This document shows positions 4,881 to 49,052 of a DNA stretch of 64,000 nucleotides, piece by piece. The stretch is from Octopus sinensis. Lineage: Eukaryota. How positions within the stretch are numbered: the first letter of the stretch is position 1; each line of letters opens with the position of its first letter. Location of the stretch: positions 107,942,001 to 108,006,000 of the forward strand of contig NC_043002.1 in NCBI RefSeq assembly GCF_006345805.1, given 5' to 3'. The position numbers and the translations under genes were made by a program. The notes beneath the pieces are model-generated. The model was given only the letters and a program-made list of their open reading frames with translations, was not told where the DNA came from and searched no databases.

Positions 4881-5128
4881 ATTATCATTATTATCTATAG
4901 GCTGTAGAGTGGAAGATAAATGAACATGAAATTTTGATGGAAAGTTTTAATATCATTTAAAACAGGAACTTTGTATTATAGAATCAAGGATAGCCTGAGG
5001 TGAGTTGGTAACAAAAGGGTTGATGTAAGTTTTTTTCTAAGTTTGTTTGAACAAGTTGTATTCACTAATAATGTAAGATACTATTAACATTTTAATTCCA
5101 GTAGTAAATTTCAAAAGTTATACACAAT

Positions 5129-5712
5129 AGGCGCAGGAGTGGCTGTATGGTAAGTAGCTTGGTAACCAACCACATGGTTCTGGGTTCAGTCCCACTGCGT
5201 GGCATCTTGGACAAGTGTCTTTTGCTATAGCCTCGGGCCGACCAATGCCTTGTGAGTGGATTTGGTAGATGGAAACTGAAAGAATCCTGTCATATATATA
5301 TATAGGCGCAGGAGTGGCTGTGTGGTAAGTAGCTTGCTTACCAACCACATGGTTCTGGGTTCAGTCCCACTGCGTGGCATCTTGGGCAAGTGTCTTTTGC
5401 TATAGCCCCGGGCCGACCAATGCCTTGTGAGTGGATTTGGTAGACGGAAACTGAAAGAAGCCTGTCGTATATATGTATATATATATAAGCGTGTGTGTAT
5501 ATGTTTGTGTGTCTGTGTTTGTCCCCCTAGCACTGCTTGACAACCGATGCAGGTGTGTTTACGTCCCCGTCACTTAGCGGTTCGGCAAAAGAGACCGATA
5601 GAATAAGTACTGGGCTTACAAAGAATAAGTCCTGGGGTCGAGTTGCTCGACTAAAGGCGGTGCTCCAGCATGGCTGCAGTCAAATGACTGAAACAAGTAA
5701 AAGAGTAAAAAA
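5129..5712 (+). mobile_element. Family B SINE (tRNA-like head, CORE-like ccttgggcaag segment), full copy 5304-5712 preceded by a duplicated 5' half 5129-5292
   Basis: Head aggcgcaggagtggctgtgtggtaag occurs twice; tail tgactgaaacaagtaaaagag; ends about 30 bp from a TMEM63 donor. Confidence 0.85.
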
Positions 5713-6504: not shown

Positions 6505-7078
6505 ATCTACGGCTGGATGCCCTTCCTAACACCAACCACTCCGAGAGTGTAGTGGATGCTCTTTATGTGCAACCAGCACAGGAGCTAGTCAGATGACCCT
6601 GGCATTGATCATGTCCGGACAGTTCTTTTTATGTGCCACCAGCACAGGAGCCAGTCAGCGGGCACTGGCATTAGCCATATTTGGATGGTGCTTTTTATGT
6701 GTCACTGGCACGGGAGCCAGTCAGATGACCCTGGCATTGATCATGTCCGGACAGTTCTTTTTATGTGCCACCGGCACAGGAGCCAGTCAGGGGGCACTGG
6801 CATTAGCCATATTTGGATGGTGCTTTTTATGTGTCACTGGCACGGAAGCCAGTCAGGTGGCCCTGACATTGATCATGTTTGGATAGTGCTTTTTACATGC
6901 CACCGGCATGGGAGTCAGTCAAGCAGACCTGGCATCAACCATGTTCAGATGGTGCTTTTTATGTGCCACCGGTATGGGAGTCAGCTAGGCAGACCTAGCA
7001 TCGACCATATTTGGATGGTGCTTTTTATGTGCCACCAGCACGGGAGCCAGTCAGGGAGCACCAGCATCAACCACATTC
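6505..7078 (-). mobile_element. Family C interspersed repeat ((GAT)n-tailed) with an internal ~62-bp VNTR
   Basis: ctacggctggatgcccttcctaac core and tandem gtgctttttatgtgccac units; other copies near 3180-3545, 16375-16945, 30360-30519, 32450-32858, 33890-34332, 39655-40040 and 62962-63395. Strand inferred from the (GAT)n tail. Confidence 0.75.
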
Positions 7079-8006
7079 ATAACAAAATATTAAGTTTGGT
7101 TGAACAACCTTTCATTGTTTTACACTTATAGACTAAAGTAATGCATTCTATGTTAGAGTCATTGACATTGACAGTAGTATTATTTTTACCAAGCTTAGAA
7201 GCATAAAAGGCAGATTAGACCTGAATAGGATTTGAACTCAAGACTGCAAAGAGATGTAACCAAAAATCACACTTTGTCCGATGCTCTACCAATCCTGCCA
7301 ATTCACTGCCCACGTCTTAACAACTCTCAGACATGACAACCTCACAACAGGGATTAAACAGGTCACACTACAATTTATTGCACACTGAGACATTTTATCA
7401 TAAAATAAAACAAAACAATTGCACAGTTCTATATTAAAGAGATGAGGAATTATGTACATTATTTACATTCGATGGATATTTGTCCTCATCTTGTTTGTTG
7501 CTAACATGTTTCAGCTGATATACCCTCCAGCCTTCTTCAAGTGTCTTGGGGAAATTTCGAACTTGGGTTCGAATGTAAATAATGTAAATAATAAAAATGT
7601 AAATAATAAAAACAATTGCACTATTTCAGTAAAGAGTTGTGGAACTTGGACATCTTGCCTTCTTGCTTCCATGCTACAGTACTCAATGTGTCCTTCATAT
7701 TTTAAGGCAGAAGAGTGTGATATGAGGGATATTTGGCTGCTATTTGTAGTGGATTGAGCAAACATGTAGAAGTTTCCTCGTTTAATTATTTCAAAGATTC
7801 TTAATTTACACAAGCTATAAATCAGTTTTTGCTTATTAATATAGAATATTAATAAGCTGGATGCCCTTCCTAACCTATCCTGCTCAAAAGGTCCCTGAAT
7901 AAGGGTTGTTTAAGGGTGATGAACAAAACACCCATGTTTCCAAAGGTGAATTATCCAAATCCCAAAGAATTCCTCTCAACACATGACTATGATTCTCCCC
8001 AACTAC

Positions 8007-8044
<38 letters not shown>

Positions 8045-8196
8045 TAGTTTTATTTTTATAGTGTGCTTTCACTTCACTACTGAGCGCAGCTCTGTGTGCC
8101 TTGGGTATGTGCTGTGGTTTGTTGAGATGCTCTTATGGTTACTGTATGTGTTTCATAAGATAATTGTTTACCTTGAATACAACAAAACCAACTCAC

Positions 8197-8359
8197 CTTA
8201 CGCACAGCAGTTTTTTCTGCTGTAGAACGAGCACACATTATACGGATTCCATAGTTGAACAGTTCGGAGAAACGCATCAACTCCAAACCAGTACCAATAA
8301 ATGCTGATGTTATCACATAATTTACAAAAAAAGCACCATTTCCAGACACAAAGATACAC
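8197..8359 (-). CDS. TMEM63: TMEM63 exon (CIFVSGNGAFFVNYVITSAFIGTGLELMRFSELFNYGIRIMCARSTAEKTAVRK)
   Basis: ttccacag acceptor and GTGAGT donor; 163 nt; GAFFVNYVI.SAFIG...EL.R signature. Confidence 0.98.
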
Positions 8360-9094
8360 CTGTGGAAAACAACAACAACATCAAGTTCATCAACAGCTCA
8401 CAACTTTTTGAAAGAATATGAATGTTATTTTCTTTTTTCATCATTTAACCAACCCTTTAGTATTCAGATTAATCTGTTAAATGTAATACATTTTTCACTT
8501 AAATTGTTTTGAATTAATCATACATTATCTTACAGCTTTGAAGTTTCAATGGTGTGATAGTTTATTCTTAGAATGTCAATGTAGGTTAGGTGTGAGGGGC
8601 CAGATATGGCCAGTTTGAATGTAAAACATGTAGGATATTTGGGCCGGATATGGCCGGCTTAAACACCAAAGGGTTAAGCAGAAGAAGAACAGCAATACTT
8701 GTGACCATGGCATCGAAGATTGGAAGGAGGAAGAAACAATGTTAGAGTAGGAAGCAGAAACCTGGTTCCTCTGGTTCAAATCTTGGTCCAAATGCTTATA
8801 GCAGTGTGGACTCTACTAAAAGCACTTGAAACTAATTGTGCAGTATGGAGAGGGGTTAGAGTTAAGCTGCATAATATGACTGGAATGTTCTTTCCATTTC
8901 TCTGTTTCTTTTCTAAACAGTTATGAATAATTATTTTACTACAAAGAACATAGAATAGAGGGGTAAAGTGGGAGACGTAGGGGTGGATCAGGAAGGAAAA
9001 CAGAACAGAAAGAAGTAGAATGATGTGGAAGGTGGAGGAGCAGTAGAGACGGGGATATAGGGATGCAAAAGGACAAAGGCTTAAGATTACTTAC

Positions 9095-9151
9095 TGCCAT
9101 CTGTAACGATGTTGTTTGTCTTTTACTGCCCATTCAAGTAAGGCTTTGACG
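9095..9151 (-). CDS. TMEM63: TMEM63 exon (VKALLEWAVKDKQHRYRWQ)
   Basis: gtttcag acceptor and GTAAGT donor; 57 nt, phase 2 to 2; bridges the flanking exons in frame. Confidence 0.92.
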
Positions 9152-9673
9152 CTGAAACAGAAGAGAAGAAAACTAATGACAAGAATACTTGGTACCGACA
9201 ACAGAAATGTGTCAAAGTGTAGAATATGGAATACAAATTCTGACTATTTTTGAGGACGTTGGAAGATGGAATTATTTGATAGCAAAGTTGCCTTTTATTG
9301 ATACATTCCCCAAACAGCAAGATAATGGAGGAACTTTTAAATGGTCATTCAACCACTTAGAAATAGCAGTTAAACCGCTGACAAACCACATCTTGCTGTC
9401 TGGAAGATGAAGGGACACATTAAGCAAGGGGTCATATATATACAAAAAAAAGATGAGGTGATCATAGTGAGAATACACAAGATCATGTGTATGTCTGATT
9501 AAAGTCAACTTGGGTGCAAAACAGCACCATGCTGAGTTATTGATTTAAATAATAACCTAAATATGGCAGTAACCAGCAATGAAGCACAATGCCGTGTGAA
9601 TAAAGTGTTTGACATGGTTGACTCATCTTTATTTAAATAGTTTATTAAAAGGACATTACAAAGCAAAATCTAT

Positions 9674-11891: not shown

Positions 11892-12146
11892 CAGTGGTTC
11901 CGAAACTTTTCCAGGATGCTGCTCCCTTGACACCCAGGCCACATTCCTAGCTCCCCCACCCCAACTAACCCTCACAAACACAGACCTCTTTCTGAAGCAA
12001 ACTCAAAGCAACTGTATTTCACAAATAAAACTTAACCTAACAAACCCATTACTTTGTTTTTACATGAATCACTACCCCCATTATAACCCCACTTTTCTTC
12101 AATGCTCCCTCGGAACTTTCCATTGCCCCCATTTTGGGAACCACTG
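11892..12146. mobile_element. hAT/Charlie-type MITE
   Basis: TIRs cagtggttccgaa / ttgggaaccactg; 8-bp TSD atctaaaa / atctagaa. Confidence 0.8.
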
Positions 12147-13935: not shown

Positions 13936-14219
13936 AACATCCATTTTCCATGCTGGCATGGGTTGGACGGTTTGACAGGAGCTGCAGAGCTGCACCAGAA
14001 TCCAGAATCCATGTTTTGGCATGGTTTCTATGACCGGATGCCCTTCCTAATGCCAACCACTTTATATATTTTTTATCATATTCTCTGCTGATGAATGGGA
14101 AAATCCATTGGATTAATCCCGAAATTGTTCAATTCAGGGATAATGAATTAAAAAAAGATTCCATTAGTTTGCTTTCCTCATTTTCAACATGGCATGCATT
14201 TATACTGATGTATATTGTG

Positions 14220-16036: not shown

Positions 16037-16162
16037 CAGTAAATGTTACCAGGTGAGGGTGCATAAGAGATCTCCCAATGGCCAACACCAATCTCTTCAC
16101 TAACACTAGATACAGCAGAATTATGGACTCCCTGGCAAACAGCTTGGAAATCTTGGTGTACT
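16037..16162 (-). CDS. TMEM63: TMEM63 exon (VHQDFQAVCQGVHNSAVSSVSEEIGVGHWEISYAPSPGNIYW)
   Basis: tttattag acceptor and GTAAGG donor; 126 nt; W...AP.P..I.W motif. Confidence 0.95.
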
Positions 16163-17574: not shown

Positions 17575-17943
17575 TTCTTTTATTTGTTTCAGTTATTTGA
17601 TTGTGACCATACTGGAGGACCACCTTTAGTTGAGTAAATCGACCCCAGGACTTATTCTTTGTAAGCCTAGTACTTATTCTATCAGTCTTTTTTTACTGAA
17701 CCGCTAAGTTACAGGGACGTAAACACACCAATATCGGTTGTCAAGCGATGGTGGGAGTGACAGACACAAACATATACATATATGATGGGCGTCTTTCAGT
17801 TTCCGTCTACCAAATCCAGACACTAGACTTCGGCCGGCCCGAGGCTACGGTAGAAAACATTTGCCCAAGGTGCCATACAGTGGGACTGAACCCGGAACCA
17901 TGTGGTTGGGAAGCAAGCTTCTTACCACACAGCCACTCCTTCC
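17575..17943 (-). mobile_element. Family B SINE
   Basis: Reverse complement of family B; head abuts the TA microsatellite. Confidence 0.8.
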
Positions 17944-18378
17944 CCTATATATATATATATACATATATATATACATATATATATATACATATATATACAT
18001 AGATATATACATATATATACATAGATATATACATATATATATACATAGATATATACATATATATATACATATATATACATATATATACATAGATATATAC
18101 ATATATATATTACATATATATACATAGATATATACATATATATATACATATATATACACATATATATACATATATTATACATATATATATACATATATAT
18201 ATACATATAATATCATATATATATACATATATATATACATATATACAATATAACATTATATACATATATATACATATATACCTATATATACATTATATAC
18301 ATATATATACATATATATACATATATATACATAATATATATATATATATACATATATATAATAATATATATACATATC

Positions 18379-18427
<49 letters not shown>

Positions 18428-18780
18428 ATATATATATACATATAATATACATATATATACATATATATATTACATAATATATACATATATATACATATAT
18501 AACATATATATACATATATATACATATATATACATATATATATATATATAAATCATTATATATATATATACATATATAATATATATATATACATATTATC
18601 TATATATATACATATAATATATATATTATAATAATATATATATACATATTATATACATATATATATACATATATATATACATATATTATACATATATATT
18701 ACATATATATTACATATATATACATTATATATATACATATATATATACATATATATATACATATATATATACATATATAC
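17944..18780. repeat. Long TA/CATATA microsatellite, left flank of the PLE palindrome
   Basis: Directly visible; the same motif in the same orientation resumes at 23745-23892. Confidence 0.95.
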
Positions 18781-18925
18781 AAAGAGCAATAAAGATTCAA
18801 GTTAATTTAAAAAAATTACTTGAATATGGTACCTAACTTAGATGCACCAAAAAAAACTATACTGATTTAACAATACAGTAATGTGGGGTGATTATAAGCG
18901 AGAAAGAAGCAACAAGAATGGATAG

Positions 18926-19019
18926 GTTTTAGTACGATCGTTTCATACAAGGACAGGTTTTATTAAAAGTTGCAAAGATTACAGCATATAAACAAGTCCC
19001 GTACTCATCAGCTAAAATA
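18926..19019 (-). ncRNA. Type I hammerhead ribozyme, left arm (sense in TMEM63 pre-mRNA)
   Basis: Reverse complement reads gtatttagCTGATGAgtacgggacttg...gtccttgtatGAAAcgatcGTActaaaac; predicted cleavage between 18933 and 18932. Confidence 0.85.
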
Positions 19020-20408
19020 CATGTAAGTTCTCTAGACATCCTAGTGTTTGAGGCTATACTCATGAAGTAATGTAGATAATTAAACAGATTTCTAAAGTTC
19101 ATTAAAGTTCTTTAAAGATGATGTATAGTCTTATCACAGAATTTTAAAAAAGTTTTGATAGCATCACAGAGAAGGTGACCTAATCCATATGAATTTCCAT
19201 AGATATGATGAGGGATTATATACTCACAGAAGACAAATTTATCCATTGTTATTAGCATTACAGAGAGGGTGAATTAATCCTTGTATATATGCACAGATTC
19301 CAATGGTGTAGATGTAAATTTCCAGAGAAATGGAGATGAATTTCATATTCACAGGCGATAAATTTTACAATGGTTGAACACAATGAGGTAGGTACCAATC
19401 CTTGTTATATGATTAGGTGTTTGCCATATTAATCACATTACTGCTATTCACAAGAGGCTGTAGCTATTTAACTCTTAAAGGTTGAAGGGCTTACTAGATC
19501 GGCCAAGAATAGAGAAGGGAATAGAAGAAAAGAGAGAAAATAATGGAGGAGGGAGCAAAAAAGGGGGGGGAAAGGGGGACTAAAAGAGAAGAGAAAAGGA
19601 AACAGAGAATAAGAAGAAGAAAAAGAAGAAAGAGAAAAGAGAAAGAAATAGGGAAAGAAGGGAAAAAAGAAAAAGAAAAAAGAGGGTTCTAGTTATACAG
19701 AAGAGCTAGTAGACTGTAAGTCTGGTTTTAATCAACAGGCCTCTAGGAACTGGAGGGGAATGTTATTCTTTGACCAGTAAACCGTTAATTTATTGCTGTT
19801 GAAATCAGCTATGAGTTTAAAGAGAATCTAAAGAGATAACACAGTCAGGGGTTAAGGGGTCAGATGCTAAAATCACCAGAAAATACATTAGGAAAATCTA
19901 AGTATAATCTTATCAAAAAGTCATTAAAAATTTACTTATTTAATTTATTCATTTTATTGTCTTAAGGAGTTGTCGTTATTATTCATACATTGACCGACTA
20001 CATGTCAAATCTTATAAGATCATTTACAAGGTGTTAGGGGATTGTCTATCCTAATGAAGATAATCATATTATCACCGAGGGAATAGCCTTATTTATTTAA
20101 TTATGAAATAGAATTATGGGGCTACAGTAACTAATTATAATTATTAGAGTTATGCTATTTAAATTAGATTAAGTTAGGAATTAAAATTAAATATTACAAT
20201 TAAGATTTAAAATTAAGAATTTAAAAATTGTGAGTTTGAAATTAAATAAAGCCTCAATTAAGTAGCGAATAAGTACTATTCATTTCCCTGTTCTCAAAAA
20301 ACTGATGTAGATATAAGGAAAAAGATAAAGATAACTGTAATGTGAGAACTCTTAGTTATCTACTTAAAGCAGTGCTATACTAGTAGAAATCAAGTTATAT
20401 CTATCTAT

Positions 20409-20852
20409 CTAGTTATGAATATTCCAATCATTTAAAATATTTAAAGTCTTCAATTTAGCGTGGACACAAACTTGACCTAGTTCGATATGGTTATTCAATA
20501 AGTTTCTATGTTTACTATGCTTTAGAATTTCGTACGTCTCCATGGAGCATAGTTGACAACCAACCCTACTATTTTTATACGGAATTGCTCTCCTAACTAT
20601 TTCCCAATTAAGGGTATAATTTTTGTTATTATTTTTGAGTTCCCAGATTTTGTTTGAAAGTGTGGTGGTACCAGCTTTATGACGTAATTTAAAAGTCGAG
20701 ATGTGATTTCTAACTCTGGCTAAAAAATTAATTGTACAGCCAATGTAAAAATATTTGTTATTCTCCGTGGATATGGTACATTTATAGATTACATTATTTT
20801 CCCTACATAGACCAGGTGCCGGGCATTTTGATTTTATTCTACACTTACACAC
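20409..20852 (-). CDS. PLE-type GIY-YIG endonuclease domain, left arm (open; upstream Asn-rich frame continues with frameshifts to about 21322)
   Basis: CKCRIKSKCP..GLC...VIYKC...YIG....F..R..NH..TF......TTLS.KIW.LK...W.I....Y.....CQLC..E...LLN...EL...C.H pattern, matching GIY-YIG domains of Penelope-like retroelements; ends in TAG. Confidence 0.88.
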   Translation of the reverse strand: MCKCRIKSKCPAPGLCRENNVIYKCTISTENNKYFYIGCTINFLARVRNHISTFKLRHKAGTTTLSNKIWELKNNNKNYTLNWEIVRRAIPYKNSRVGCQLCSMETYEILKHSKHRNLLNNHIELGQVCVHAKLKTLNILNDWNIHN

Positions 20853-21672
20853 AGGAGGAACAACTTCAGGCCTTGGATTATTCCTGGGTAGATGTTTAAG
20901 GTTCCTATTATTTTGATTATCATTTCTATAGTTGGTACTGATATCTAAAGTATTGTTATTATTTATTGATCCTTCCGTTTCATCATTTAGGTGTAAAGTC
21001 CTACCAAGATTCTTATATTATTCGTAATGTTATTATTATTGTTAGTTTTTATCCAACTGTATATTATTGTTATAGATATCACTGATATTTTCATTCTCCT
21101 TATTTTCTCCATTAGCCTTATTTCTATTATTTCTATTATTAACAATATTACTTCTATTAATATCGGCATTGTTATTATTACTATTATGTTAATGTTATTA
21201 GTCATTCTGTGGTTACTAATTTCACCTATGTTTTGATAGTTCCTATTGCTGTTTTTATTGTTGGTAGTATTATTGTTATTGCTATTGGTATTCATTCTGA
21301 TATTACTATTTTTATTTCTATAGAAATTTTTATAGAAATAAAAAATAGTAATATCAGAATGAATACCAATAGCAATAACAATAATACTACCAACAATATA
21401 AAACAGCATAGGAACTATCAAAACATAGGTGAAATTAGTAACCACAGAATGACTAATAACATTAACATTAATAGTAATAATAACAATGCCGATATTAATA
21501 GAAGTAATATGTTAATAATAGAAATAATAGAAATAAGGCTAATGGAGAGAAAATAAGGAGAATGAAAATATCAGTGATATCTATAACAATAATATACAGT
21601 TGGATAAAAAGACTAACAATAATAATAACATTACGAATAATATAAGAAATCTTGGTAGGACTTTACACCTAA

Positions 21673-22250
21673 ATGATTGAAACGGAAGGATCAATAAATA
21701 ATAACAATACTTTAGATATCAGTACCAACTATAGAAATGATAATCAAAATAATAGGAACCTTAAACATCTACCCAGGAATAATCCAAGGCCTGAAGTTGT
21801 TCCTCCTGTGTGTAAGTGTAGAATAAAATCAAAATGCCCGGCACTGGTCTATGTAGGGAAAATAATGTAATCTATAAATGTACCATATCCACGGAGAATA
21901 ACAAATATTTTTACATTGGCTGTACAATTAATTTTTTAGCCAGAGTTAGAAATCACATCTCGACTTTTAAATTACGTCATAAAGCTGGTACCACCACACT
22001 TTCAAACAAAAATCTGGGAACTCAAAAATAATACAAAAATTATACCCTTAATTGGGAAATAGTTAGGAGAGCAATTCCGTATAAAAATAGTAGGGTTGGT
22101 TGTCAACTATGCTCCATGGAGACGTACGAAATTCTAAAGCATAGTAAACATAGAAACTTATTGAATAACCATATCGAACTAGGTCAAGTTTGTGTCCACG
22201 CTAAATTGAAGACTTTAAAAATTTTAAATGATTGGAATATTCATAACTAG
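21673..22250 (+). pseudogene. PLE-type GIY-YIG endonuclease domain, right arm, with 1-nt indels
   Basis: Reverse complement of the left-arm ORF; 1-nt indels near 21844, 22010 and 22033 split it into supplied ORFs 21673..21870 and 21834..22031; TAG at 22248-22250. The indels may be consensus errors. Confidence 0.8.
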
Positions 22251-23621
22251 ATAGATAGATATAACTTGATTTCTACTAGTATAGCACTGCTTTAAGTAGA
22301 TAACTAAGAGTTCTCACATTACAGTTATCTTTCTTTTTCCTTATATCTACATCAGTTTTTTGAGAACAGGGAAATGAATAGTACTTATTCGCTACTTAAT
22401 TGAGGCTTTATTTAATTTCAAACTCACAATTTTAAATTCTTAATTTTAAATCTTAATTGTAATATTTAATTTTAATTCCTAACTTAATCTAATTTAAATA
22501 GCATAACTCTAATAAATTATAATTAGTTACTGTAGCCCCATAATTCTATTTCATAATTAAAAATAAGGCTATTCCTCGGTGATAATATGATTATCTTCAT
22601 TAGGATAGACAATCCCCTAACACCTTGTAAATGATCTTATAAGATTTGACATGTAGTCGGTCAATGTATGAATAATAACGACAACTCCTTAAGACAATAA
22701 AATGAATAAATTAAATAAGTAAATTTAATGACTTTTTGATAAGATTATACTTAGATTTTCCTAATGTATTTTCTGGTGATTTTAGCATCTGACCCCTTAA
22801 CCCCTGACTGTGTTATCTCTTTAGATTCTCTTTAAACTCATAGCTGATTTCAACAGCAATAAATTAACGGTTTACTGGTCAAAGAATAACATTCCCCTCC
22901 AGTTCTAGAGGCCTGTTGATTAAACCAGACTTACAGTCTACTAGCTCTTCTGTATAACTAGGAACCCTCTTTTTCTTTTTCTTTTTTTCCCTTCTTTCCC
23001 TATTTCTTTCTCTTTCTCTTTCTTCTTTTCTTCTTCTTATTCTCTGTTTCTTTTCTCTTCTCTTTAGTCCCCCTTTCCCCCCCCTTTTTTGCTCCCTCCT
23101 CCATTATTTTCTCTCTTTTCTTCTATTCCCTTCTCTATTCTTGGCCGATCTAGTAAGCCCTTCAACCTTAAGAGTTAAATAGCTACAGCCTCTTGTGAAT
23201 AGCAGTAATGTGATTAATATGGCAAACACCTAATCATATAACAAGGATTGGTACCTACCTCATTGTGTTCAACCATTGTAAAATTATCGCCTGTGAATAT
23301 GAAATTCATCTCCATTTCTCTGGAAATTTACATCTACACCATTGGAATCTGTGCATATATACAAAGGATAATTCACCCTCTTGTAATGCTAAACAATGGA
23401 TAAATTTGTCTTCTGTGAGTATATAATCCCTCATCATATCTATGGAAATTCATATGGATTAGGTCACCTTCTCTGTGATGCTATCAAACTTTTTTTAAAA
23501 TTCTGTGATAAGACTATACATCATCTTTAAAGAACTTTAATGAACTTTAGAAATCTGTTTAATTATCTACATTACTTCATGAGTATAGCCTCAAACACTA
23601 GGATGTCTAGAGAACTTACAT

Positions 23622-23716
23622 GTATTTAGCTGATGAGTACGGGACTCGTTTATATGCTGTAATCTTTGCAACTTTTAATAAAACCTGTCCTTGTATGAAA
23701 CGATCGTACTAAAAAC
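23622..23716 (+). ncRNA. Type I hammerhead ribozyme, right arm
   Basis: Stem I UUUAG 23625-29 pairs with CUAAA 23709-13; core CUGAUGA 23630-36; stem II GUACGGGAC/GUCCUUGUAU; GAAA 23697-700; palindromic stem III ACGAUCGU; predicted GUA cleavage after 23708. Confidence 0.85.
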
Positions 23717-23744
23717 CTATCCATTCTTGTTGCTTCTTTCTCGC

Positions 23745-23832
23745 GTATATACATATATACATATATATACATATATATATACATATATATATACATATAT
23801 ATATACATATATATAATATATATATATATACA

Positions 23833-23887
<55 letters not shown>

Positions 23888-23892
23888 ATATA
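23745..23892. repeat. TA/CATATA microsatellite, right flank of the PLE palindrome
   Basis: Directly visible. Confidence 0.95.
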
Positions 23893-24427
23893 CTCTGGAC
23901 CAGATGTAATCAACTGTCCCCTATCCACAAATTTCAAGCTTTGTGCCTAAAGCAGAAATCGTTAATTATTGGCAACTGGCAGAATCGTTAGCACGCTGGG
24001 CAAAATGCTTGGCATCATTTTATACATCTTTATGTTTTGAGTTCAAATCCCAATGAAGTCGACTTTGCTTTTCATCCTTTTGGGGTCAATGAAATAAGTA
24101 CCAGTTGAGTACTGGGGATGATGCAATTGACTTACTACTTCCTGCAAAATGTCAGGCCTTGTGCCTATAGTAGAAAGGATTATTATTATTATTATTAAAG
24201 CAACAAGCTGGCAGAATCATTTGCATGCCGGGTGAAATGCTTAGCAGTATTTTGTCTGCTGCTACATTCTGAGTTCAACTTTGCCTTTCATCCTGTCGAT
24301 TAAATAATTACTAGTTATGTACTGAGATCAATGTAATTGACTTAATCCCTTCCCCATAAATATGAGGCCTTCCAGCTTACCAGCCCTGGTCAAACCATCC
24401 AACCCATTCCAGCATGGACAACGGACA

Positions 24428-25124: not shown

Positions 25125-25258
25125 TTTTCAGCCATGACATCTGTAGCAAGAGTGAGGAAGGCCATTCCTAGGGGTCGTTGATAGGCACAAACTTTTTCAG
25201 TCTCCACTTTATTGCTTAGTCTCATTTCATCTTCTGTGTAGTACTCAATAGCATCAAC
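25125..25258 (-). CDS. TMEM63: TMEM63 exon (VDAIEYYTEDEMRLSNKVETEKVCAYQRPLGMAFLTLATDVMAEK)
   Basis: gtctcag acceptor and GTAAGT donor; 134 nt; DAI.YY and PLGMAF motifs; within supplied ORF 25121..25315. Confidence 0.97.
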
Positions 25259-25704
25259 CTGAGACAAACAGAGATTTGGACGTTGAAGATTATAGTTAAA
25301 TACAAAGAAGGACATCAGACATGATGGTTATTTTAATCACACATAAATACATATATACACAATCATCATTTAGCATCCGTATTCCATGCTGGCATGGAAT
25401 CTGACAAATCAAAAGGTTGTGTTGAGTGCCAGTGCCTGTATTGGTAGGGTTTCTACAGCTGGATGCCCTCCCTAATGCCAACCACTTTACAGAGTGTACT
25501 GGGTGCTTCCTTTGTGGAACTGGCACTAGTGAAGTCACCAAGTAACTTGCAAGACAAGATTCTTTGACTGAGAGGGTGTCTAGTATTGTGGCAGGTGGCA
25601 CAATACTAGACAAAAATTGGTTTGTTTTGGTGAGCAAAGTTTTAAATTAAAAAAATAAATATCATAACAAATAAATAAAGAAAAGAAAATTAGCATCTCC
25701 TCAC

Positions 25705-31327: not shown

Positions 31328-33821
31328 CTAGAGAGAAAATTAGAAAAAAATATAAATCAAACACAAAATTATGGACTGAATGGTTACAAAAGAAATGTTG
31401 GCGCCAATACACAGAGATGGTTTCGATTAGTCTTATGTACTGTTGATGTTTTCATGGCACTCTGTCAGTTACAATGACGAGGGTTCCAGTTGATCCAATC
31501 AATGGAAAAGCCTGCTCGTGAAATTAACATGCAAGCTGAACACTCCACAGGCACATGTACCCTTAATGTAGTTCTCGGGGAGATTCAGCATGAATGAGAG
31601 TGTGACAAGACTGGCTCCTTTGAAATACAGGTACAACAGAAACAGGAAGAAAGAGTAAGAGAAAGTTGTGGTGAAAGAGTACAGCAGGGTTTGCCACCAC
31701 CCCCTGCTGGAGCCTTGCGGAGCTTTAGGTGCTTTCTCTCAATAAACACTCACAACGCCTGGTCTGGGAATCGAAACCGCAATCCTATGACCGCGAGTCC
31801 ACTGTCCCAACCACTGGGCCATTGTGCCTCCACTTTTTTGATGTATTAAAAGGAGACTAAACTTTTACTTGAAACACTTTGACCCATTGATGGGTGCAGG
31901 GAAGAAGTTTTCAGACTGGTTATTATTTTTTTTTACTGTTGAAAGAACTCACTGAGAGTTGTTCAACACAAAGTAAAACCTGACCAAGCAGACCCATTAG
32001 TCAAAGGCGTTCCATCCACGACCATCCCAGCTTTTTACAGGTGTGTAGGACAAAATTATATCTCATATAATCCTTTTCTTATTCAAGGTGGCATGATTCA
32101 ATTGAACAACCGTTGTGTGCTATTTCTAGCAGACTGAGGATCTTTTGTAGGTTTAATGCTCCCAAGGGAGCAGAAATATGCTGTGATAGTTGTTTAGCCC
32201 CAGGTCAGCCATGATTCAGCAGATGTGTCATTAAAAGATGGTTAATTTTTGGCTAGTCTAAACAGATCATCTGTAATATGGTGTCCAACATGTCTTTTTT
32301 TAGGACTGCTTTGAGTAATTTTTGGCTTTGCCTTTGGAATATTTAGTTGCTATTTCTAAGACATTAAGCAGTCATGTGAAGGCTCCATTAACTCATTAAT
32401 GCAGACCATCTCCAAAACAAAAAATTATAGAAAGTACTCCAGTGTTGCCTGTCATATGACAAATAACACTCTACAGTGGAACATAAAAAGCATCATTTGA
32501 ATATGGTCGATGCCAGTGCTGCCTGACTGACTACCATGCCAGTGGCCTATAAATAGCACCAGTTGAGCGTAGTCAATGCCAGTGCTGCCTGACTGGCTCC
32601 CGTTCTGGTAGCATGTAAAAAGCACCATCCGAATGTAGCCGATGCCAGTGCCGCCTGACTGGCCCCTGTGCCAGTGGCACGTAAAAAGCACCCACTATAT
32701 TATCAGAGTGGTTGGCGTTACAAAGGGCATCCAGCTGTAGAAACCTGGCCAGATTAGATTGGAGCCTGGTGCAGCCTCCTGGTTTGCCAGATCTCAGTCA
32801 AACCATCCGACCCATGCCAGCATGGGAAGCGGACGTTAAACAATGAAGATGATGATGTGTATGTACACACACACACACACTGTAGAGTGTTGTCGCTCAT
32901 GTGATGGATAACTCTGGAAGTACATTTTTGCCACCATGAGTAATATCAGGAAATATGATGCATATACAATAATGTATTGTTTAAATTTCGTCAAATCTCT
33001 TAGTGCTTAAAAAAAGAAAAATATTACTTTAAAATAAAATCAAATAAAAGATTTCTCATTGGTTTAACTCCTCCCACAACCACTATTCATTTATTTACTC
33101 TCCTCTTCCTTTGTCTCTGATCCCTTCTCTCACTCTGTGAGAGTGTGTATGTGTGTTCTTTTACTCCTTAAGTGCACATGTCCTGCATGTCTTATGTTAA
33201 CTCTCTCACCTCCTCTCTCTACACAATGTAAAGCATGACTTGGAAAATCCAACCAACATTTCTATTGGCTTTTATTAAATAGAGATTTAATTAAACTTTA
33301 TACATTAACAGGTTAACAGGACATGTTATATGTGAAACAAAAGATGTCTGCACCAATTTGTTAACTTAATATTTTTTTCCTTTTTTGTCAAAAAATGCTG
33401 CTAGGTATAAAAGAGGTAATTAGTTTCTTTGTTAATGTTATTTCTAGAATATATAATTGTTAGAATATGTAACAATTTGCGTAATATGATGCACACAAGT
33501 CCACCCAGATTACTTCCAAGACATTTTGAGCTTTCGTTTTTAGTGAAAATATTAGAAATTGTTCTTTTTGTTTTCCATTAAATTAACTTCTAATAAAGAC
33601 ATAAGGTTACAAAATATGGTTTTCCACAATACAGATACACAAATACACAATCCGCATTACAGATAAACAGTCAATTTCTAGTGACCCCTAATATTTGATT
33701 ACGGGATGAAAGAAGGATTTCAACTCAGATACTAAAAAACATAGGACAAAACATTTTCACTGCTATTACATACTCATTATGGTTGGCCTTTTCTGTCATT
33801 GGTTGAAAGTATTGCCGAGAC

Positions 33822-33884: not shown

Positions 33885-34434
33885 GTATGGCATCCGTTGC
33901 TAGTGGAGCACTAAGAGTACCATATAAGTGAGATCGTAGCCAGAGCAACAAGCTGGCCTTTGTGCCGATGGCGCGTTAAACACACCATTCGAGCGTGATC
34001 ATTACCTGCATCACCTTACTAGCACTTGTGCTGGTGGCACATGAAAAAAAACATTCGAGCGAGGTCGTTTGCCAGTACTGCTGGATTGGCTCCTGTGCAG
34101 GTGGCACATAAAAAGTACCATTTGAACGTGGTCATTGCCAGTACCATCTAACTGGCCCTTGTGCCGGTGGCGCGTAAAAGCACCCACTACACTCTCGGAG
34201 TGGTTGGTGTTAGGAAGGGCATCAAGCTGTAGAAACTCTACCAGATCAGATTGGAGTCTGGTTCGCCAGACCTCAGTCAAATCATTCAACCCATGCTAGC
34301 ATGGAAAGCGGACGTTAAACGATGATGATGATATATATATATATATATATATATAATATCTACACATATTGTGGAAAATAAACTATAATTTTAAATCTGT
34401 TGTTTTATATGATGTATTTCAGCTTAATTGTTAC

Positions 34435-37274: not shown

Positions 37275-40200
37275 CTAAAAATACAAGAAAATTATATATT
37301 AGCTATATATTAATTATATATATATATACATATATATGGTGCCACATAAAAAGGGTCCAGTCCACACTGTAGAGTGGTAGGCATTTGGAAGGATATCCAG
37401 CTGTAAAAACCATGTCAAAATCTGACCTCACTTCTGAAGGATAGTTGGGGTTAGGAAGGGCATCCAGCAGTAAAAAATCATGCCAAAACAGACACTGAAG
37501 CCTTGTACAGTCTTCTGCCTAGCCAGCTCCGGTCAAACCGTCTAACCCATGCTGCCATGTGTACGACAGTTTGATAGGGAACCATCAAGTGTAGGGCTGC
37601 ATCGAGTTTCAATGTCATCTATAGCATGGTTTCTACACCTGGACATCCTTCCTAATGCCAACCGCTTTACAGAGTATACTGGGTGTTTGTTTTCATGCTA
37701 CTGGCACTAGTGAGATTGCCATGTAAACTTGCAAGACAGGAAAAAACAGAGACAGAAGAGAAGAAAATGGAGGAAAAAGTCACCACTACTGAGAAGTATT
37801 TAGGAAGGGAAGGTGGAAATGAGTGGCTGTGTGTCAGGTATTGAAAAGCTAGTCTGTCTCTTTTATTTATTTCTCATACATACATTCCTCAGTTTATGGT
37901 CTGTTTTCATGCTAGCAAGGGTTGTCATGTTCACATACCAGTATAAAATAACTAAAGTTGTTTCTTATTTGGAGTCACTCCTCCACTAGATGAGTTGGGG
38001 TCTGAGTCTATTTGTACAATCCATTTTTAGCATGGCTTCCATTGCTGGATGCCAGCCACTTTACAGAACGTATTGGATGAATTTTAGATTGGCACCAAAA
38101 CAAGCATTTGCCTTGCTCTTACTAAAACTAATTACATCATTTCATTCAATGCAATGTGAGAGAGAAGGTGAAAAGAAGAGAGTGGAATGGAGGAGAGAGA
38201 ACAGGGATGAGAGAGTGATAGACAAAGTAGTAGTGGAGAGATTGTGATAGGTAGCTACATGATGGTTGTTGGTAAGGACATTGATTAGAAAGCAGTGTGA
38301 TGAGAGAGAGGGATGAGAGCACAGTATATGTCAATAATGAATTATAGGAGGAAGACAGAGTGATGTTAAAACCAAGTGATGAAGGAGGGAGTGTTGAGAG
38401 AAAGATGTAAAAGAAAGATAGTAAAGAAAAGTAATGGGGTCAGGAGTTGAATGCAGACAGATTCAATACCATCTTTTGTTACAAGATGGGGGGGGAGTGC
38501 AGTAAACAATACAGTGTGTTTGATAGATGAGAGGGTAATGAAGAGACAAGAAGGGTAATTAACAGAAAGATCATACACAAGATACCCAAATGTAGACAAC
38601 ATGCAACACAACCATGACCACCACCACCACCATCATTTTAATTTTCAATTGTTTGTGTCTGCATGAATAGGTAGGTCCTCTCCAACACTGTGTGTTGCCA
38701 TTCCTCATGGCCTGTAGTTGTCTCTTTCAGGAGGTTGAGCTTCTTCGGTCTTCATCATTTCTGAGATTTCCCTCTTCTACAGATTCTTAATACAACTGAC
38801 AACCTCTATACACATACCCATACCATCACAATCTTACAAACACTTGCACATCTAATCCCATTCCTCTTATACCCAACTTCTCTGTTTACTTGTGCTCTGC
38901 TGTTCTTAAACATTAATGTTACACATCCAGTGGAGCATATTCATCCCATTTCTTTCCCCCCACCTTTTTTTTTTTGCAAGTCCTCAGAATTTAAGGCCCA
39001 CATCTTGCTCCCATACTTTGAACACAAGCATAACCATCTGCCCTTCAATCTGTGATAGATCCCTTTGTTACGGTCCTTGACTTTTCCCACCTTGTTCTTG
39101 CTATGGTTACTACACATTCACGGTGCCCACCTACACTGCTATTTAGGTCACCTTGGCAACAAAACTATCAGTTACTTTTGTCAAGTCTCAAAGGCATTCT
39201 TTGCGTACATTTACTGCTGACTACTTTTGTTCAACTGGTACATACAAAGGTGACCTACTCTGTTGGCCTGTCTCTGAATCTATCACATCCATACTTTACA
39301 CTGGGTACACCATATGGAAGTTGTACCTTTTCAGAATACTGAGCAAGGCAATTTTTCTGAGAAGGTGGCGAGCTGGCAAAAACGTTTAGTACACCGGGTG
39401 AAATGCTTAGCAATATTTTGTCTACCGTTACATTCTGAGTTCAAATTCCACTGAGGTCGACTTTGCCTTTCATCCTTTTGGGATGTATTAAACATGGTTC
39501 TGGGTTCAGACCCACTGTCCGGTAACTTAGTTAGGTGTCTTCTACTGTAACCTCAAGCTGATCAGAGCCTTGTGAGTAAATTTGGTAGATAGAAACAAAG
39601 AAACTGGAATGTATACTTTTATATACATACAAATCAGAATCGAAATCGATCAATGGAAATTGCAGCTGAGTTACCAGTGCCGGTGGCACGTAAGAGAACC
39701 ATCCGAACGTGGCTGTTGCCAGCGCCACCCTGACTGGCCTCGTGCCAGTGGCACATAAAAAGCACCATCCGTTCGTGGCCGTTGCCAGCCTCGCCTGGCC
39801 CCCATGCCAGTGGCACATAAAAAGCACCATCCGATCGTGGCCGTTTGCCAGACTCGTCTGGTACCTGTGCCGGTGGCACGTAAAAAGCACCCACTACACT
39901 CATGGAGTGGTTGGCATTAGGAAGGGCATCCAGCCGTAGAAACATTGCCAGATCAAACTGGGCCTAGTGCAGCCTTCTGGCTTCCCAGACCCCAGTTGAA
40001 CCATCCAACCCATGCTAGCATGGAAAGCGGACGCTAAACGATGATGATGATGATGATGATATATATATATGCCAAATCAGACTGGAGACTGGTGCAGACC
40101 CTCAGCTTACTAGCCCTGGCCAAACCACCCAACCCATGTCAGCATGGACAACAGATGCTAAACAATGATAATGATATATATAAAACAAAGTTATTTTATT

Positions 40201-40884: not shown

Positions 40885-43800
40885 GTGTCTCCCACCATTT
40901 ATTTCTTTATTACCCACAGGGGGCTAAACATAGAGGGGACAAACAAAGATAACGTGTCTCCCACCATTTATTTCTTTATTACCCACAGGGGGCTAAACAT
41001 AGAGGGGACAAACAAAGATAACGTGTCTCCCACCATTTATTTCTTTATTACCCACAGGGGGCTAAACATACAGGGGACAAACAAAGATAACGTGTCTCCC
41101 ACCATTTATTTCTTTATTACCCACAGGGGGCTAAACATAGAGGGGACAAACAAAGATAACGTGTTTCCCACCATTTATTTCTTTATTACCCACAGGGGGC
41201 TAAACATAGAGGGGACAAACAAAGATAACGTGTTTCCCACCATTTATTTCTTTATTACCCACAGAGGGCTAAACATAGAGGGGACAAACAAAGATAACGT
41301 GTTCCCACCATTTATTTTTCTTATTACCCACAGGGGGCTAAACATAGAGGGGACAAACAAAGATAACGTGTTTCCCACCATTTATTTCTTTATTACCCAC
41401 AGGGGCTAAACATAGAGGGGACAAACAAAGATAACGTGTCTCCCACCATTTATTTCTTTATTACCCACAGGGGCTAAACATAGAGGGGACAAACAAAGAT
41501 AACGTGTTTCCCACCATTTCTTTATTACCCACAGGGGGCTAAACATAGAGGGACAAACAAAGATAACGTGTTTCCCCCACCTTTATTTCTTTATACCCAC
41601 AGGGGGCTAAACATAGAGGGGACAAACACAGATAACGTGTTTCCCACCATTTATTTCTTTATTACCCACAGGGGGCTAAACATAGAGGGACAAACAAAGA
41701 TAACGTGTCTCCCACCATTTATTTCTTTATTACCCACAGGGGGCTAAACATAGAGGGGACAAGGAAAGATAACGTGTTTCCCACCATTTATTTCTTTATT
41801 ACCCACAGGGGGCTAAACATAGAGGGGACAACAAAGATACGTGTTTCCCACCATTTATTTCTTTATTACCCACAGGGGGCTAAACATAGAGGGGACAAAC
41901 AAAGATAACGTGTCTCCCACCATTTATTTCTTTATTACCCACAGGGGGCTAAACATAGAGGGGACAAACAAAGATAACGTGTTTCCCACCATTTATTTCT
42001 TTATTACCCACAGGGGGCTAAACATACAGGGGACAAACAAAGATAACGTGTTTCCCACCATTTATTTCTTTATTACCCACAGGGGGCTAAACATAGAGGG
42101 GACAAACAAAGATAACGTGTTTCCCACCATTTCTTTCTTTATTACCCACAGGGGGCTAAACATAGAGGGACAAACAAAGATAACGTGTCTCCCACCATTT
42201 ATTTCTTATTACCCACAGGGGGCTAAACATAGAGGGACAAACAAAGATAACGTGTTTCCCACCATTTATTTCTTTATTACCCACAGGGGCTAAACATAGA
42301 GGGGACAACAAAGATAACGTGTCTCCCACCATTTATTTCTTTATTACCCACAGGGGGCTAAACATAGAGGGGACAAACAAAGATACGTGTTTCCCACCAT
42401 TTATTTCTTTATTACCCACGGGGGCTAAACATAGAGGGGACAAACAAAGATAACGTGTTTCCCACCATTTATTTCTTTATTACCCACAAGGGGCTAAACA
42501 TAGAGGGGACAAACAAAGATAACGTGTCTCCCACCATTTATTTCTTTATTACCCACAGGGGGCTAAACATAGAGGGGACAAACAAAGATAACGTGTTTCC
42601 CACCATTTATTTCTTTATTACCCACAGGGGGCTAAACATAGAGGGGACAAACAAAGATAACGTGTTTCCCACCATTTATTTGTTTATTACCCACAGGGGG
42701 CTAAACATAGAGGGGACAAACAAAGATAACGTGTTTCCCACCATTTATTTCTTTATTACCCACAGGGGGCTAAACATAGAGGGGACAAACAAAGATAACG
42801 TGTTTCCCACCATTTATTTCTTTATTACCCACAGCGGGCTAAACATAGAGGGGACAAAGAAAGATAACGTGTTTCCCACCATTTATTTCTTTATTACCCA
42901 CAGGGGGCTAAACATGGAGGGGACAAACAAAGATAACGTGTCTCCCACCATTTATTTCTTTATTGCCCACAGGGGGCTACACATAGAGGGGACAAAGAAA
43001 GATAACGTGTTTCCCACCATTTATTTCTTTATTACCCACAGGGGGCTAAACATGGAGGGGACAAACAAAGATAACGTGTCTCCCACCATTTATTTCTTTA
43101 TTACCCACAGGGGGCTAAACATAGAGGGGACAAACAAAGATAACGTGTCTCCCACCATTTATTTCTTTATTACCCACAGGGGCCTAAACATAAAGGGGAC
43201 AAACAAAGATAACGTGTCTCCCACCATTTATTTCTTTATTACCCACAGGGGGCTAAACATAGAGGGGACAAACAAAGATAACGTGTCTCCCACCATTTAT
43301 TTCTTTATTGACCACAGGGGGATAAACATAGAGGGGACAAACAAAGATAACGTGTCTCCCACCATTTATTTCTTTATTACCCACAGGGGGCTAAACATAG
43401 AGGGGACAAACAAAGGTAACGTGTCTCCCACCATTTATTTCTTTATTGCCCACGGGGGATAACATAGAGGGGACAAACAAAGATAACGTGTCTCCCACCA
43501 TTTATTTCTTTATTACCTACCCACAGGGGCTAAACATAGAGGGGACAAACAAAGATAACGTGTCTCCCACCATTTATTTCTTTATTACCCACAGGGGGCT
43601 AAACATAGAGGGGACAAACAAAGATAACGTGTCTCCCACCATTTATTTCTTTATTGCCCACAGGGGGCTAAATATAGAGGGGACAAACAAGATAACGTGT
43701 CTCCCACCATTTATTTCTTTATTACCCACAGGGGGCTAAACATAGAGGGGACAAACAGATAAAACGTGTCTCCCACCATTTATTTCTTTATTACCCACAG

Positions 43801-47032: not shown

Positions 47033-47884
47033 TGGTATATGTGTGTGTGTGTGTGTATATGTTTGTGTGTGTGTTTGTCCCCCAAAACATCGTTTGACAA
47101 CCAATGCTGGTGTGTTTACATCCCCGTAACTTAGCAGTTCAGAAAAAGAGGCCAACAGAATAAGTACTAGGCTTACAAAGAATAAGCTCTGGGTTGAATT
47201 TGCTCGACTAAAGGCGGTGCTCCAGCATGGCCACAGTCAAATGGCTGAAACGAATAAAAGAGTAATATACAAGAGTTCATTAGTGGTTAGCCACATAAAG
47301 AGATCTCTAAATTATTTCAACAAACAAATGAAAAAGGCCCTCACTCAACATTTTTATTAAATCATCAAAGAGTTAATGTTTCCTACATTAAATATCTTAA
47401 GAATAACTTAACTAAAACTAATACAGAGTTTGGTGTTTGCTTTCTTTTTTTGTTTAGTTTTTCTTGTCTTGGTGGTGGGTGTTCAAAGCTAATGAAAAAA
47501 CATTCCAGAAATATACACAATAAATGTACTGTTTACTGTAATGATCTTTGCCCATCCCCAACCACAGACACCTCTTAACAACTCCTGGAGCTGGGCCATT
47601 GTGCCTTGGTGAGGAGAATGCAGTCAAAAACAAGATGTTAGTGAAGCATAAGAAGGTTTAACCAAGAGAACATTTAAAATAGAGCTTTTCATTAAAGAAT
47701 GATTTTAATTTTATACAAACACCTGTGATATTGTATGAATGAATGAAGCTCTTAAAATATTATGCAGTCAAGCAGAAAGTGACAGTGTGACTTTGTCTTT
47801 TGTCTTTTTGGCATAGTTTACCCTAGTTGGCAAATAGCTATCTCCCACATTGAAGATCATACCCAAGTGGTTACTGCTAAAATT

Positions 47885-47978
47885 ATATATGTACACATAC
47901 ATATATATATATATAGATATATATATACACACACACCCATACATATATATATATATATATATACACACACACCCATAC

Positions 47979-48012
<34 letters not shown>

Positions 48013-48385
48013 CCATACATATATATATATATATATTATACACACACAACCCATACATATATATATATATACACACACACCCATACATATATATATATAA
48101 TATATATATATATACACACACACACACACCCATACATATATATATATATATAATATATACACACACACACCCATAATATATATATATATATATATATATA
48201 CACACCACACCCATACATATATATATATATAATATATACACACACACCCATACATATATAATATATATATATATATATACACACACACCCATACATATAT
48301 ATACACACACACACATACACGCAAATACATACAAACACATACATATATACACACACACATATACAAACACATATACACACACAAA
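47885..48385. repeat. Compound (TA)n/(CA)n microsatellite with repeated cccatac unit
   Basis: Directly visible. Confidence 0.9.
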
Positions 48386-48394
48386 TACATATGT

Positions 48395-48725
48395 TCTTTT
48401 GTTTCAGTCATTTGACTGTGGCCATGCTGGAGCACTGCCTTTAGTCAAGCAAATCGACCCCAGGACTTATTCTTTGTAATCCTAGTACTTATTCTATCGG
48501 TCTCTTTTGCCAAACCGCTACATTACAGGGACGTAAACACACCTGCATCGGTTGACAAGCGATGTTGGGGAAGACAAACACAGACACAGAAACATATACA
48601 CACACACATTATATATATATACACACACACACAACAGGCTTTCAGTTTCCCTCTACCAAACCCACTCAAAAGGCTTTGGTCAGCGTGAGGCTATAGCAGA
48701 AGACACTTGCTCAAGGTGCCATGCA
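48395..48725 (-). mobile_element. Family B SINE (head truncated)
   Basis: Reverse complement of the family B tail and body. Confidence 0.8.
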
Positions 48726-48762
48726 GTATATACACACAGACATGTATATATATATATATATA

Positions 48763-48797
<35 letters not shown>

Positions 48798-49052
48798 TAT
48801 ACTTGAAATTTACAGGAAAACAAAAGATGAAGACAGGTGAAGGAACAACAAGCAGGTGTATTAGTGTAATGTTCGGGAAGAATGGGAAAGACTTTGACAT
48901 TTTGAGCCTATGCTCTTCGACAGAAGGAAATAAGAGGGAAAAAATGTAGAAAAAAACGGAAAAGAAATCGATAGAGAAAAACTGTGTAGAGTTCAGCAGT
49001 CAAACATGGTGAGTTATATATATATATACACACACACGCGTGTGTGTGTGTA

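Follow-up and report, generated by a model that had tools for sequence, protein, structure and literature searches.

Insertions of Penelope-like elements (PLEs) canonically comprise pseudo-long terminal repeats (pLTRs), a one-sided 'tail' and, on the 5′ side, an inverted 5′-truncated copy (Evgen'ev and Arkhipova 2005, as cited in PMC8557442; Arkhipova et al. 2013, PMC3846280). The tail is known to occur at one end only (PMC8557442), and in vitro it corresponds to the interval between two alternative, adjacent start sites of the reverse transcriptase (RT) (PMC11167929). Asn-rich segments between the RT and the endonuclease (EN) have been described in rotifer Penelope elements, and palindromes at inverted PLE junctions have been read as traces of self-priming (PMC3846280). 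The Hydra clade of PLEs is defined by a C-terminal EN, a CxCX5C linker motif and DKT in place of DKG; it has CxxC and CxH around the conserved E and N and lacks the CCHH motif, and its members carry detectable hammerheads, insert into (TA)n and are found in Mollusca among other phyla (PMC8557442). PLE integration is poorly understood, the origin of the inverted copies and of the one-sided tail being an open point (PMC8557442, PMC3846280, PMC11167929). The present analysis concerns a stretch of 64,000 nucleotides of the Octopus sinensis genome (contig NC_043002.1, positions 107,942,001 to 108,006,000; hereafter, the window), in which two inverted copies of a PLE, probably of the Hydra clade, form a palindrome with arms of about 2.4 kb inside an intron of a TMEM63/OSCA-like gene.

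The large inverted repeat of the window is centred at 21326/21327, its arms occupy 18898-21326 and 21327-23744, and no spacer separates them. A global alignment of the left arm with the reverse complement of the right arm contained 2398 identical columns out of 2444. The parts of the insertion and its flanks are as follows, in positions of the window:

17946..18780, no strand: left target flank, a microsatellite (TA)n/(CATATATA)n of about 830 bp (TRF)
18781..18897, minus strand: 'tail' of 117 nt, a 3′-terminal extension of the left copy only (alignment of the arms with the copies of locus L001, introduced below)
18898..21326 (2429 nt), minus strand: left arm, assigned as a 5′-truncated PLE copy with its sense on the minus strand (inverted-repeat search and global alignment)
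21315..21338, no strand: centre, the 12-nt palindrome TTTCTATAGAAA twice in tandem, the second with one C>T; axis 21326/21327
21327..23744 (2418 nt), plus strand: right arm, assigned as a 5′-truncated PLE copy with its sense on the plus strand, without the tail
23745..23892, no strand: right target flank, a microsatellite (TA)n/(CATATATA)n (TRF)

At the centre, TTTCTATAGAAA is followed directly across the axis by TTTTTATAGAAA, with G21323 against T21330 as the sole mismatch. The perfect 12-nt palindrome TTTCTATAGAAA sits precisely at the inner end of the left arm; elsewhere in the arm, perfect palindromes of this length occur at 2 of 2403 positions, and base composition would give a p of about 4e-4 per position. 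The truncation point is the same nucleotide in both arms. Read outwards, each of them contains an AAT-rich Asn-coding frame (about 470 nt), a GIY-YIG open reading frame (ORF), about 1.5 kb without ORFs that includes a CT-rich tract, and a CTGATGA...GAAAC motif. The spacer-less centre with its single mismatch and this order of contents in both arms had been described in an earlier reading of the locus made without database searches (the sequence-only reading), and the alignment bears out both.

The asymmetry of the outer ends is the main new point of the analysis. The insertion had previously been taken to coincide with the palindrome, 18898-23744, and to have symmetric ends; the palindrome itself stands, but the left copy extends a further 117 nt, which makes the insertion unit 18781-23744. 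The tail has its homologue in the terminal stretch of the direct copy at a related O. sinensis locus, L001 (about 11911-12015 of that locus), and is absent from the right arm and from the inverted copy of L001. The end of the right arm, ...CTTTCTCGC, abuts the microsatellite directly and stops at the element position where the L001 inverted copy also ends. Because each outer end coincides with the end of an L001 copy, both of them are genuine PLE termini. The architecture common to the window and L001 is a tail-less inverted copy followed by a tailed direct copy; two further loci, L002 and L003, carry direct pLTRs. The orientation of the microsatellite is the same on the left and right flanks, and therefore the element lies inside one microsatellite. 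A (TA)n target was found at the window, at L001 and at L003.

The coding parts of the two arms are the following:

20409..20852, minus strand: GIY-YIG endonuclease ORF of the left arm, 147 aa, intact, with a CxCX5C motif upstream
20853..21326, minus strand: remnant of the Asn-rich RT-EN linker of the left arm, aligned to the linker of the 809-aa L001 ORF from about residue 524 onward
21808..22250 (approximate), plus strand: GIY-YIG region of the right arm, frameshifted, with ORFs 21673..21870 and 21834..22031 and indels at 21845, 22012 and 22034 (tblastn)

The only close homologue of the window EN in the indexed protein database is an O. sinensis gene model with 62% identity, whose locus is L001. 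The exact protein of the window was not on record in public assemblies. The L001 ORF (8255..10684, 809 aa) consists of RT-type blocks, an Asn-rich linker and a C-terminal CxCX5C-GIY-YIG module. It aligns along its length with relatives of 450-800 aa, in which F.FD..YPSI, MGS.DGAE, GLYRDDGL and FLD blocks precede the EN. The arms of the window share about 71% nucleotide identity with L001, and the alignment starts from about residue 524 of its ORF, within the linker; the Asn-rich frame of the arms can thus be assigned to the RT-EN linker. No RT was found in the 64-kb window by tblastn with the RT half of the L001 ORF. Since the alignment to L001 starts inside the linker and the RT half matches nothing in the window, each arm is best described as a 5′-truncated, RT-less, non-autonomous copy of a PLE with a C-terminal EN, in agreement with the head-to-head, RT-less PLE pair of the sequence-only reading. 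L001 also bears an inverted copy of its 257-bp 3′-terminal part on its 5′ side, inside (TA)n.

The Pfam GIY-YIG match of the window protein is sub-threshold (E=0.0014, 19.3 bits against a cut-off of 22.6 bits). An exhaustive HMMER search with this protein yielded 3434 relatives at E<=1e-3 and 820 at E<=1e-10, which often carry the EN match at the C-terminus of proteins of 450-800 aa. The window EN retains 23 of the 23 invariant columns (including Y68, Y81, G83, R91, H95 and N165) and the nearly invariant E150, so that the GIY and YIG tyrosines, the glycine and the catalytic R, H, E and N are all kept; one nearly invariant residue is altered (K89 to L). As for the RT blocks, Pfam gave no match at all in the L001 ORF and no curated RT model above cut-off in its long homologues, and a weak RVT_1 match in relative P0152 (E=0.0044) lay below cut-off. 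Searches of PDB sequences with a single sequence and with a profile gave no RT match, the single-sequence search returning one unrelated weak match.

Several diagnostic motifs of the Hydra clade were recognised in the octopus copies and their relatives. The window contains the linker motif CKCRIKSKC, with C47, C49 and C55 invariant across relatives, and its EN has the CxxC (GCQLC..E) and CxH (CVH) motifs, also conserved in relatives. The DKT motif lies in a part that the truncated window copy does not have and is seen in relatives: the L001 ORF begins with ...PADKTGN, and P0145 has SDKTGN. Both octopus copies possess two Cys within the GIY-YIG core (VIYKC, YIGC), and most relatives have no core Cys. 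The element is probably a member of the Hydra clade, an assignment made from diagnostic motifs and the (TA)n target. The attribution to PLEs made in the sequence-only reading holds, and the clades it had put forward for placement (Penelope/Poseidon, Neptune, Naiad) give way to the Hydra clade, which the motifs fit best.

Several further loci with related elements were noted. L002 (9732-14354; O. sinensis CM016887.1) is another copy of the family, in which a direct pLTR fragment stands ahead of a full-length copy; it lies in an ankyrin-repeat gene model, and the annotated protein takes in PLE-derived sequence. L003 (1-17854 of a 6.7-Mb metagenome contig from ENA) includes a Hydra-like PLE with direct pLTRs in (TA)n, situated among dense same-strand ORFs, one of which encodes a Pox_A32-like ATPase; this may be a giant-virus-like or endogenised viral region. 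In L004, a compact hammerhead motif (GAAAC GATTC GTA) is located at about 7540-7609 on the minus strand, inverted, just 5′ of the PLE ORF 8001-9407, a layout with an inverted copy on the 5′ side as well, in an unrelated host.

The terminal regions of both arms contain a hammerhead-like motif:

18927..19017, minus strand: hammerhead-like type-I motif of the left arm, with CTGATGA...GAAAC at 18940-19011 (inspection and relaxed descriptor)
23624..23714, plus strand: hammerhead-like type-I motif of the right arm, with CTGATGA...GAAAC at 23630-23701 (inspection and relaxed descriptor)

Both motifs comprise CUGAUGA and GAAA as their cores; helix III is a single base pair capped by the palindromic loop GAUC, and GUA forms the cleavage triplet. 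Helix I, UUUUAG/CUAAAA, forms 6 of 6 pairs in the left arm and 5 of 6 in the right arm, owing to a 1-nt indel. Helix II is long and irregular, 60 nt separating CUGAUGA from GAAA. Both L001 copies keep the two cores unchanged; their loop reads AAUU (palindromic) or AAAU, and their changes in helix I retain G-U pairs. A descriptor of the type-I hammerhead ribozyme (HHR) matches both arms and both L001 copies. Metazoan type-I hammerheads share this architecture and are thought to work as dimers (PMC4209133). Rfam hammerhead models gave no match at the gathering threshold in the whole window, nor at E<=10 in 18300-24300, the long irregular helix II being the probable reason; Rfam returned only spurious miRNA-like matches, on the palindrome centre and the microsatellites. 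The hammerhead region folds no better than shuffled sequences (z=-0.63). The motif is a credible candidate for a type-I HHR. It was expected to cap the ends of the insertion, and while it does occur in both arms, the Rfam search is negative and the outer edge of the motif is placed inside the insertion ends by 30 nt on the right and 146 nt on the left (the cleavage site by 36 and 152 nt), so that to speak of capping claims too much. A second hammerhead-like type-I motif was seen at about 14088-14150 on the plus strand, with helix I TCTCTG/CAGGGA (6 of 6 pairs), CTGATGA, a GGGA/TCCC stem and GAAA. Its sequence shows no relation to that of the palindrome motif, and Rfam does not report it; it could be a remnant of a retrozyme or a PLE, or a chance occurrence.

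The palindrome is flanked by two exons of the host gene:

25125..25261 (approximate), minus strand: upstream TMEM63/OSCA-like exon (Pfam PHM7_cyt)
16037..16161 (approximate), minus strand: next TMEM63/OSCA-like exon (Pfam PHM7_cyt)

The joined exon pieces match positions 92-172 of the PHM7_cyt profile (PF14703) unbroken (E=3.2e-14, 53.9 bits against a cut-off of 27 bits). As the exons join without a break in this domain, the flanks are colinear and the palindrome is intronic, and the earlier statement that the exons are consecutive and that the contig as a whole is not folded back is upheld. The host can be called a TMEM63/OSCA-like gene on the minus strand, with an intron of about 9 kb, from the cytosolic domain encoded by the two exons. 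A search for TMEM63 orthologues returned only a metagenomic fragment of 67 aa.

The arms differ from each other by 35 indel events and 5 mismatched columns in the global alignment, in accordance with the previous impression that 1-nt homopolymer indels prevail over a few substitutions. The indels are mostly of 1 nt (almost all differences being of 1-2 nt) and lie within or beside short homopolymers, with 22 gaps in the right arm and 13 in the left, and two of the five mismatched columns represent an adjacent A-run/T-run shift. Compared by BLAST, the arms show 9 mismatches and 33 gap openings per arm pair, whereas 25 other repeat pairs of the same window (at least 88% identity and at least 150 nt) contain 374 mismatches and 38 gap openings over 5616 aligned nt. 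The gap-opening rate in the arms is at least twice that of the other repeats, and the ratio of indels to mismatches is the reverse of the ordinary divergence seen in them. It seems that the arms are probably essentially identical in the genome and that the differences represent local consensus error; arms identical in reality would be young or copied from each other. A true palindrome should give a poor consensus, since its reads align to either arm equally well and defeat polishing. A weakly supported artefact should do so too, and the sequence by itself does not tell the two cases apart. The apparently lower consensus quality of 18893-23749, as compared with the rest of the window, might serve as a flag for unpolished regions of the assembly.

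We consider it likely that the palindrome is real and that a single retrotransposition event produced it, the RT having switched onto cDNA. The identical truncation point, the lack of a spacer and the near identity of the arms speak for a single event. The locus would then be a young insertion of a non-autonomous Hydra-type PLE in a (TA)n-type microsatellite of a TMEM63-like intron. The version in which the cDNA folds back within one molecule is the one we favour, at somewhat less than an even chance. It is put ahead of priming on two strands because equal arms follow directly from fold-back. A further point for it is the perfect 12-nt palindrome at the turn-around, with a base rate of about 1e-3 or less. 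From the anatomy of the locus, with its nearly identical arms, its asymmetric ends and the same polarity in the relative, we infer the following order of events. Target-primed reverse transcription would start at the tail end of the element RNA and run for about 2.5 kb. Within the RT-EN linker, which is AT-rich and codes for Asn, the RT would come off the RNA template at the short hairpin-capable palindrome TTTCTATAGAAA, turn back and copy its own fresh cDNA, producing a mirror arm of equal length. The re-copying would leave the cDNA where this first becomes TA-rich (TTATAAT, with which the tail starts) and be resolved into the (TA)n target. One end carries the 117-nt tail and the other does not because, in this scheme, re-copying would stop at TTATAAT. 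Fold-back of cDNA at an AT palindrome had already been suggested in the sequence-only reading; it is reasonable, fits the published self-priming (PMC3846280) and gains from the 12-mer at the inner end of the left arm, while the two copies of the 12-mer and the asymmetric ends are not accommodated by its simple form.

A number of points weigh against this scheme. A simple fold-back predicts one copy of the 12-nt palindrome at the axis, and two are present; the hairpin that this motif can form has very little stability (stem of 4 bp, -0.4 kcal/mol as DNA); and a zero-loop turn within one strand is sterically impossible, so that a further step is needed. Plain snap-back does not predict the tail at one end and its absence at the other without such a step either. 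Two relatives read the non-palindromic GTTAGCCAGGAAT at the homologous place, and the first 6-7 nt of each arm match relatives poorly; part of the 12-mer motif may come from short fold-backs during the event. A microhomology AAATTT at the axis, which presupposes AAA 5′ of the truncation point in the parent, was considered and dropped, as the relatives read AAG and are only 71% identical. In addition, the arms have a locally worse consensus than the rest of the window. Finally, the PLE protein PAc offers a rival route: it is predicted to be dimeric, and in vitro it cuts both strands of the target and extends them (PMC11167929). In two-strand target-primed reverse transcription, the RT-EN, probably dimeric, would nick both strands of (TA)n, and one cDNA would be primed at the tail site and another at the tail-less site. 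One of the two would stop in the Asn-rich linker, pair through the self-complementary 12-mer with the other, which has like polarity, and copy it, giving equal arms anchored on both sides. Such pairing between cDNAs of like polarity needs a self-complementary motif, and one is present. PAc starts at two adjacent internal sites, the interval between which is the 'tail' (PMC11167929), and the window and L001 share their arrangement of a tail-less inverted and a tailed direct copy. The inverted copy of L001 is only 257 bp long beside a full-length copy, for which independent priming on the opposite strand offers a simple explanation, although the L001 structure can be derived under fold-back as well. 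On the other hand, the second cDNA must reach a length of at least 2.4 kb, be single-stranded and have been trimmed to precisely the place of pairing, and the in vitro data come from an element of another clade, Poseidon, with a tail of 30-40 nt (PMC11167929). The tail-less end could be a second RT start site or a product of microhomology between TTATAAT and (TA)n, and since both explanations are possible it does not separate the two schemes. Two-strand priming also predicts one 12-mer at the axis, so that neither scheme explains the two copies. It fits about as well as fold-back, and we regard it as a serious if rather unlikely route.

The remaining explanations depart from a single retrotransposition event or from the reality of the palindrome. 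In the case of an assembly artefact, the true locus would have just one copy, or inverted PLE copies whose lengths differ from those assembled, the palindrome arising from a chimeric fold-back read or a mis-resolved repeat. Inverted and tandem PLE structures are known to trouble assembly (PMC8557442, PMC3846280), the palindrome is known from assembled sequence, and the dominance of indels in the arms together with the raised gap-opening rate points to a locally poor consensus, which would also be expected of a true palindrome escaping polishing. A fold-back read would yield a flank, a segment, its mirror image and the mirrored flank; at this locus the two flanks are unlike each other and run colinear with consecutive exons, the right arm stops at a true tail-less PLE end that L001 has too and shows no mirror of the left tail and flank, and the microsatellite keeps the same orientation on both sides. 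A plain read fold-back was rejected on these grounds. The locus thus holds, at the least, two inverted PLE copies with proper termini, while the exact equality of the arms and the centre sequence depend on the assembly; on balance an artefact seems improbable. In many genomes, short inverted repeats give rise to palindromes and fold-back inversions, and the 12-nt palindrome at the axis would suit an inverted duplication at the DNA level, through template switching or fold-back repair after the insertion of a single 5′-truncated copy. Its second breakpoint would have to fall by chance on the end position of the L001 inverted copy, the flanking host DNA is not duplicated, and an interstitial resolution needs a second switch back into the microsatellite, all of which makes this course of events very improbable. 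Two independent insertions of 5′-truncated copies in opposite orientations into the same microsatellite would agree with the preference of the Hydra clade for (TA)n tracts (PMC8557442). For this, both copies would have to break off at one and the same nucleotide, have no microsatellite left between them and show no real divergence from each other; given the identical truncation point and the missing spacer, this explanation is excluded in practice, with hardly any probability left to it.

If the palindrome is real and transcribed, the pre-mRNA of the host gene would carry a hairpin of about 2.4 kb with almost perfect pairing. On general grounds one may reasonably expect editing, the production of small RNAs and instability through cruciforms, and TMEM63 expression would be touched by effects of double-stranded RNA or editing only on condition that the hairpin exists, is transcribed and persists. 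It is a long shot that the locus represents a frozen integration intermediate showing the switch of the RT from RNA to cDNA at a hairpin-capable motif or, separately, that the intronic hairpin of about 2.4 kb, in a channel gene of an animal with abundant RNA editing, acts as a small-RNA source against its own family or as an ADAR substrate affecting the processing of the host transcript. As a young symmetric pair with one tailed and one tail-less end, the locus offers a clean natural test case for PLE integration, and a genome-wide census built on this pair could separate fold-back self-priming from two-strand priming. Palindromic PLE loci are also sites at which long-read consensus and polishing suffer, and they deserve a flag in cephalopod assemblies.

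The window contains other repeats as well. A satellite array of 5.3 kb occupies 40885-46227, with a 69-bp unit repeated about 78 times at 95% matches (TRF). A 66/132-bp tandem unit (TGCTTTTTATGTGCCACCGGCAC...) is found at five places (6557-7061, 32506-32692, 33984-34179, 39677-39891 and 63123-63395), and tRNA-like heads of the short interspersed nuclear element (SINE) type are seen in repeats near it, for example at 5127-5479 and 17880-17945. SINE-like repeats of the window are shared with other O. sinensis loci at up to about 90% identity, and the 66/132-bp unit is probably a composite SINE family shared with this species. In 47884-50467 lie extended microsatellites of (TA)n and (ATAC)n/(AC)n, whose GC skew is strong.

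Compared with the Hydra clade, the octopus element is alike in the GIY-YIG EN at the C-terminus, after the RT, in the full-length relative, in the CKCRIKSKC linker, in CxxC/CxH and in the DKT of the relative's ORF, as well as in the candidate hammerhead motif of the terminal region, the insertion into (TA)n and the molluscan host. Unlike it, the octopus copies hold the two Cys VIYKC and YIGC in the EN core, the clade being described without CCHH, and have a long Asn-rich RT-EN linker and a 3′ untranslated region of 1.3-1.5 kb, owing to which the octopus unit measures about 4.2 kb rather than less than 3 kb. In L1 twin priming, said to go back to Ostertag and Kazazian in 2001, both target strands can reportedly prime on the element RNA and leave inverted segments in one insertion. 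Twin priming inverts different parts of a single copy and produces no duplicated mirror image, and L1 uses an APE endonuclease and poly(A) priming. In the hairpin-primed second-strand synthesis of classical cDNA cloning, the 3′ end of the first-strand cDNA folds back and is self-extended; it is known in vitro, whereas at the present locus unfolding and chromosomal integration would have to follow. The canonical PLE insertion resembles the octopus locus in its head-to-head inverted copies, one-ended tail, junction palindrome, AT-rich simple-sequence target and Asn-rich segment between RT and EN. It differs in that both copies of the window are cut at the same nucleotide, giving a spacer-less palindrome with 2.4-kb arms and no full-length copy, and in that the tail measures 117 nt rather than 30-40 nt. 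Inverted 5′-truncated partners, one-sided tails, Asn-rich linkers, junction palindromes and (TA)n targeting are already published for PLEs, and the locus is an unusually symmetric, young example of this known arrangement in a cephalopod, probably from the Hydra clade.

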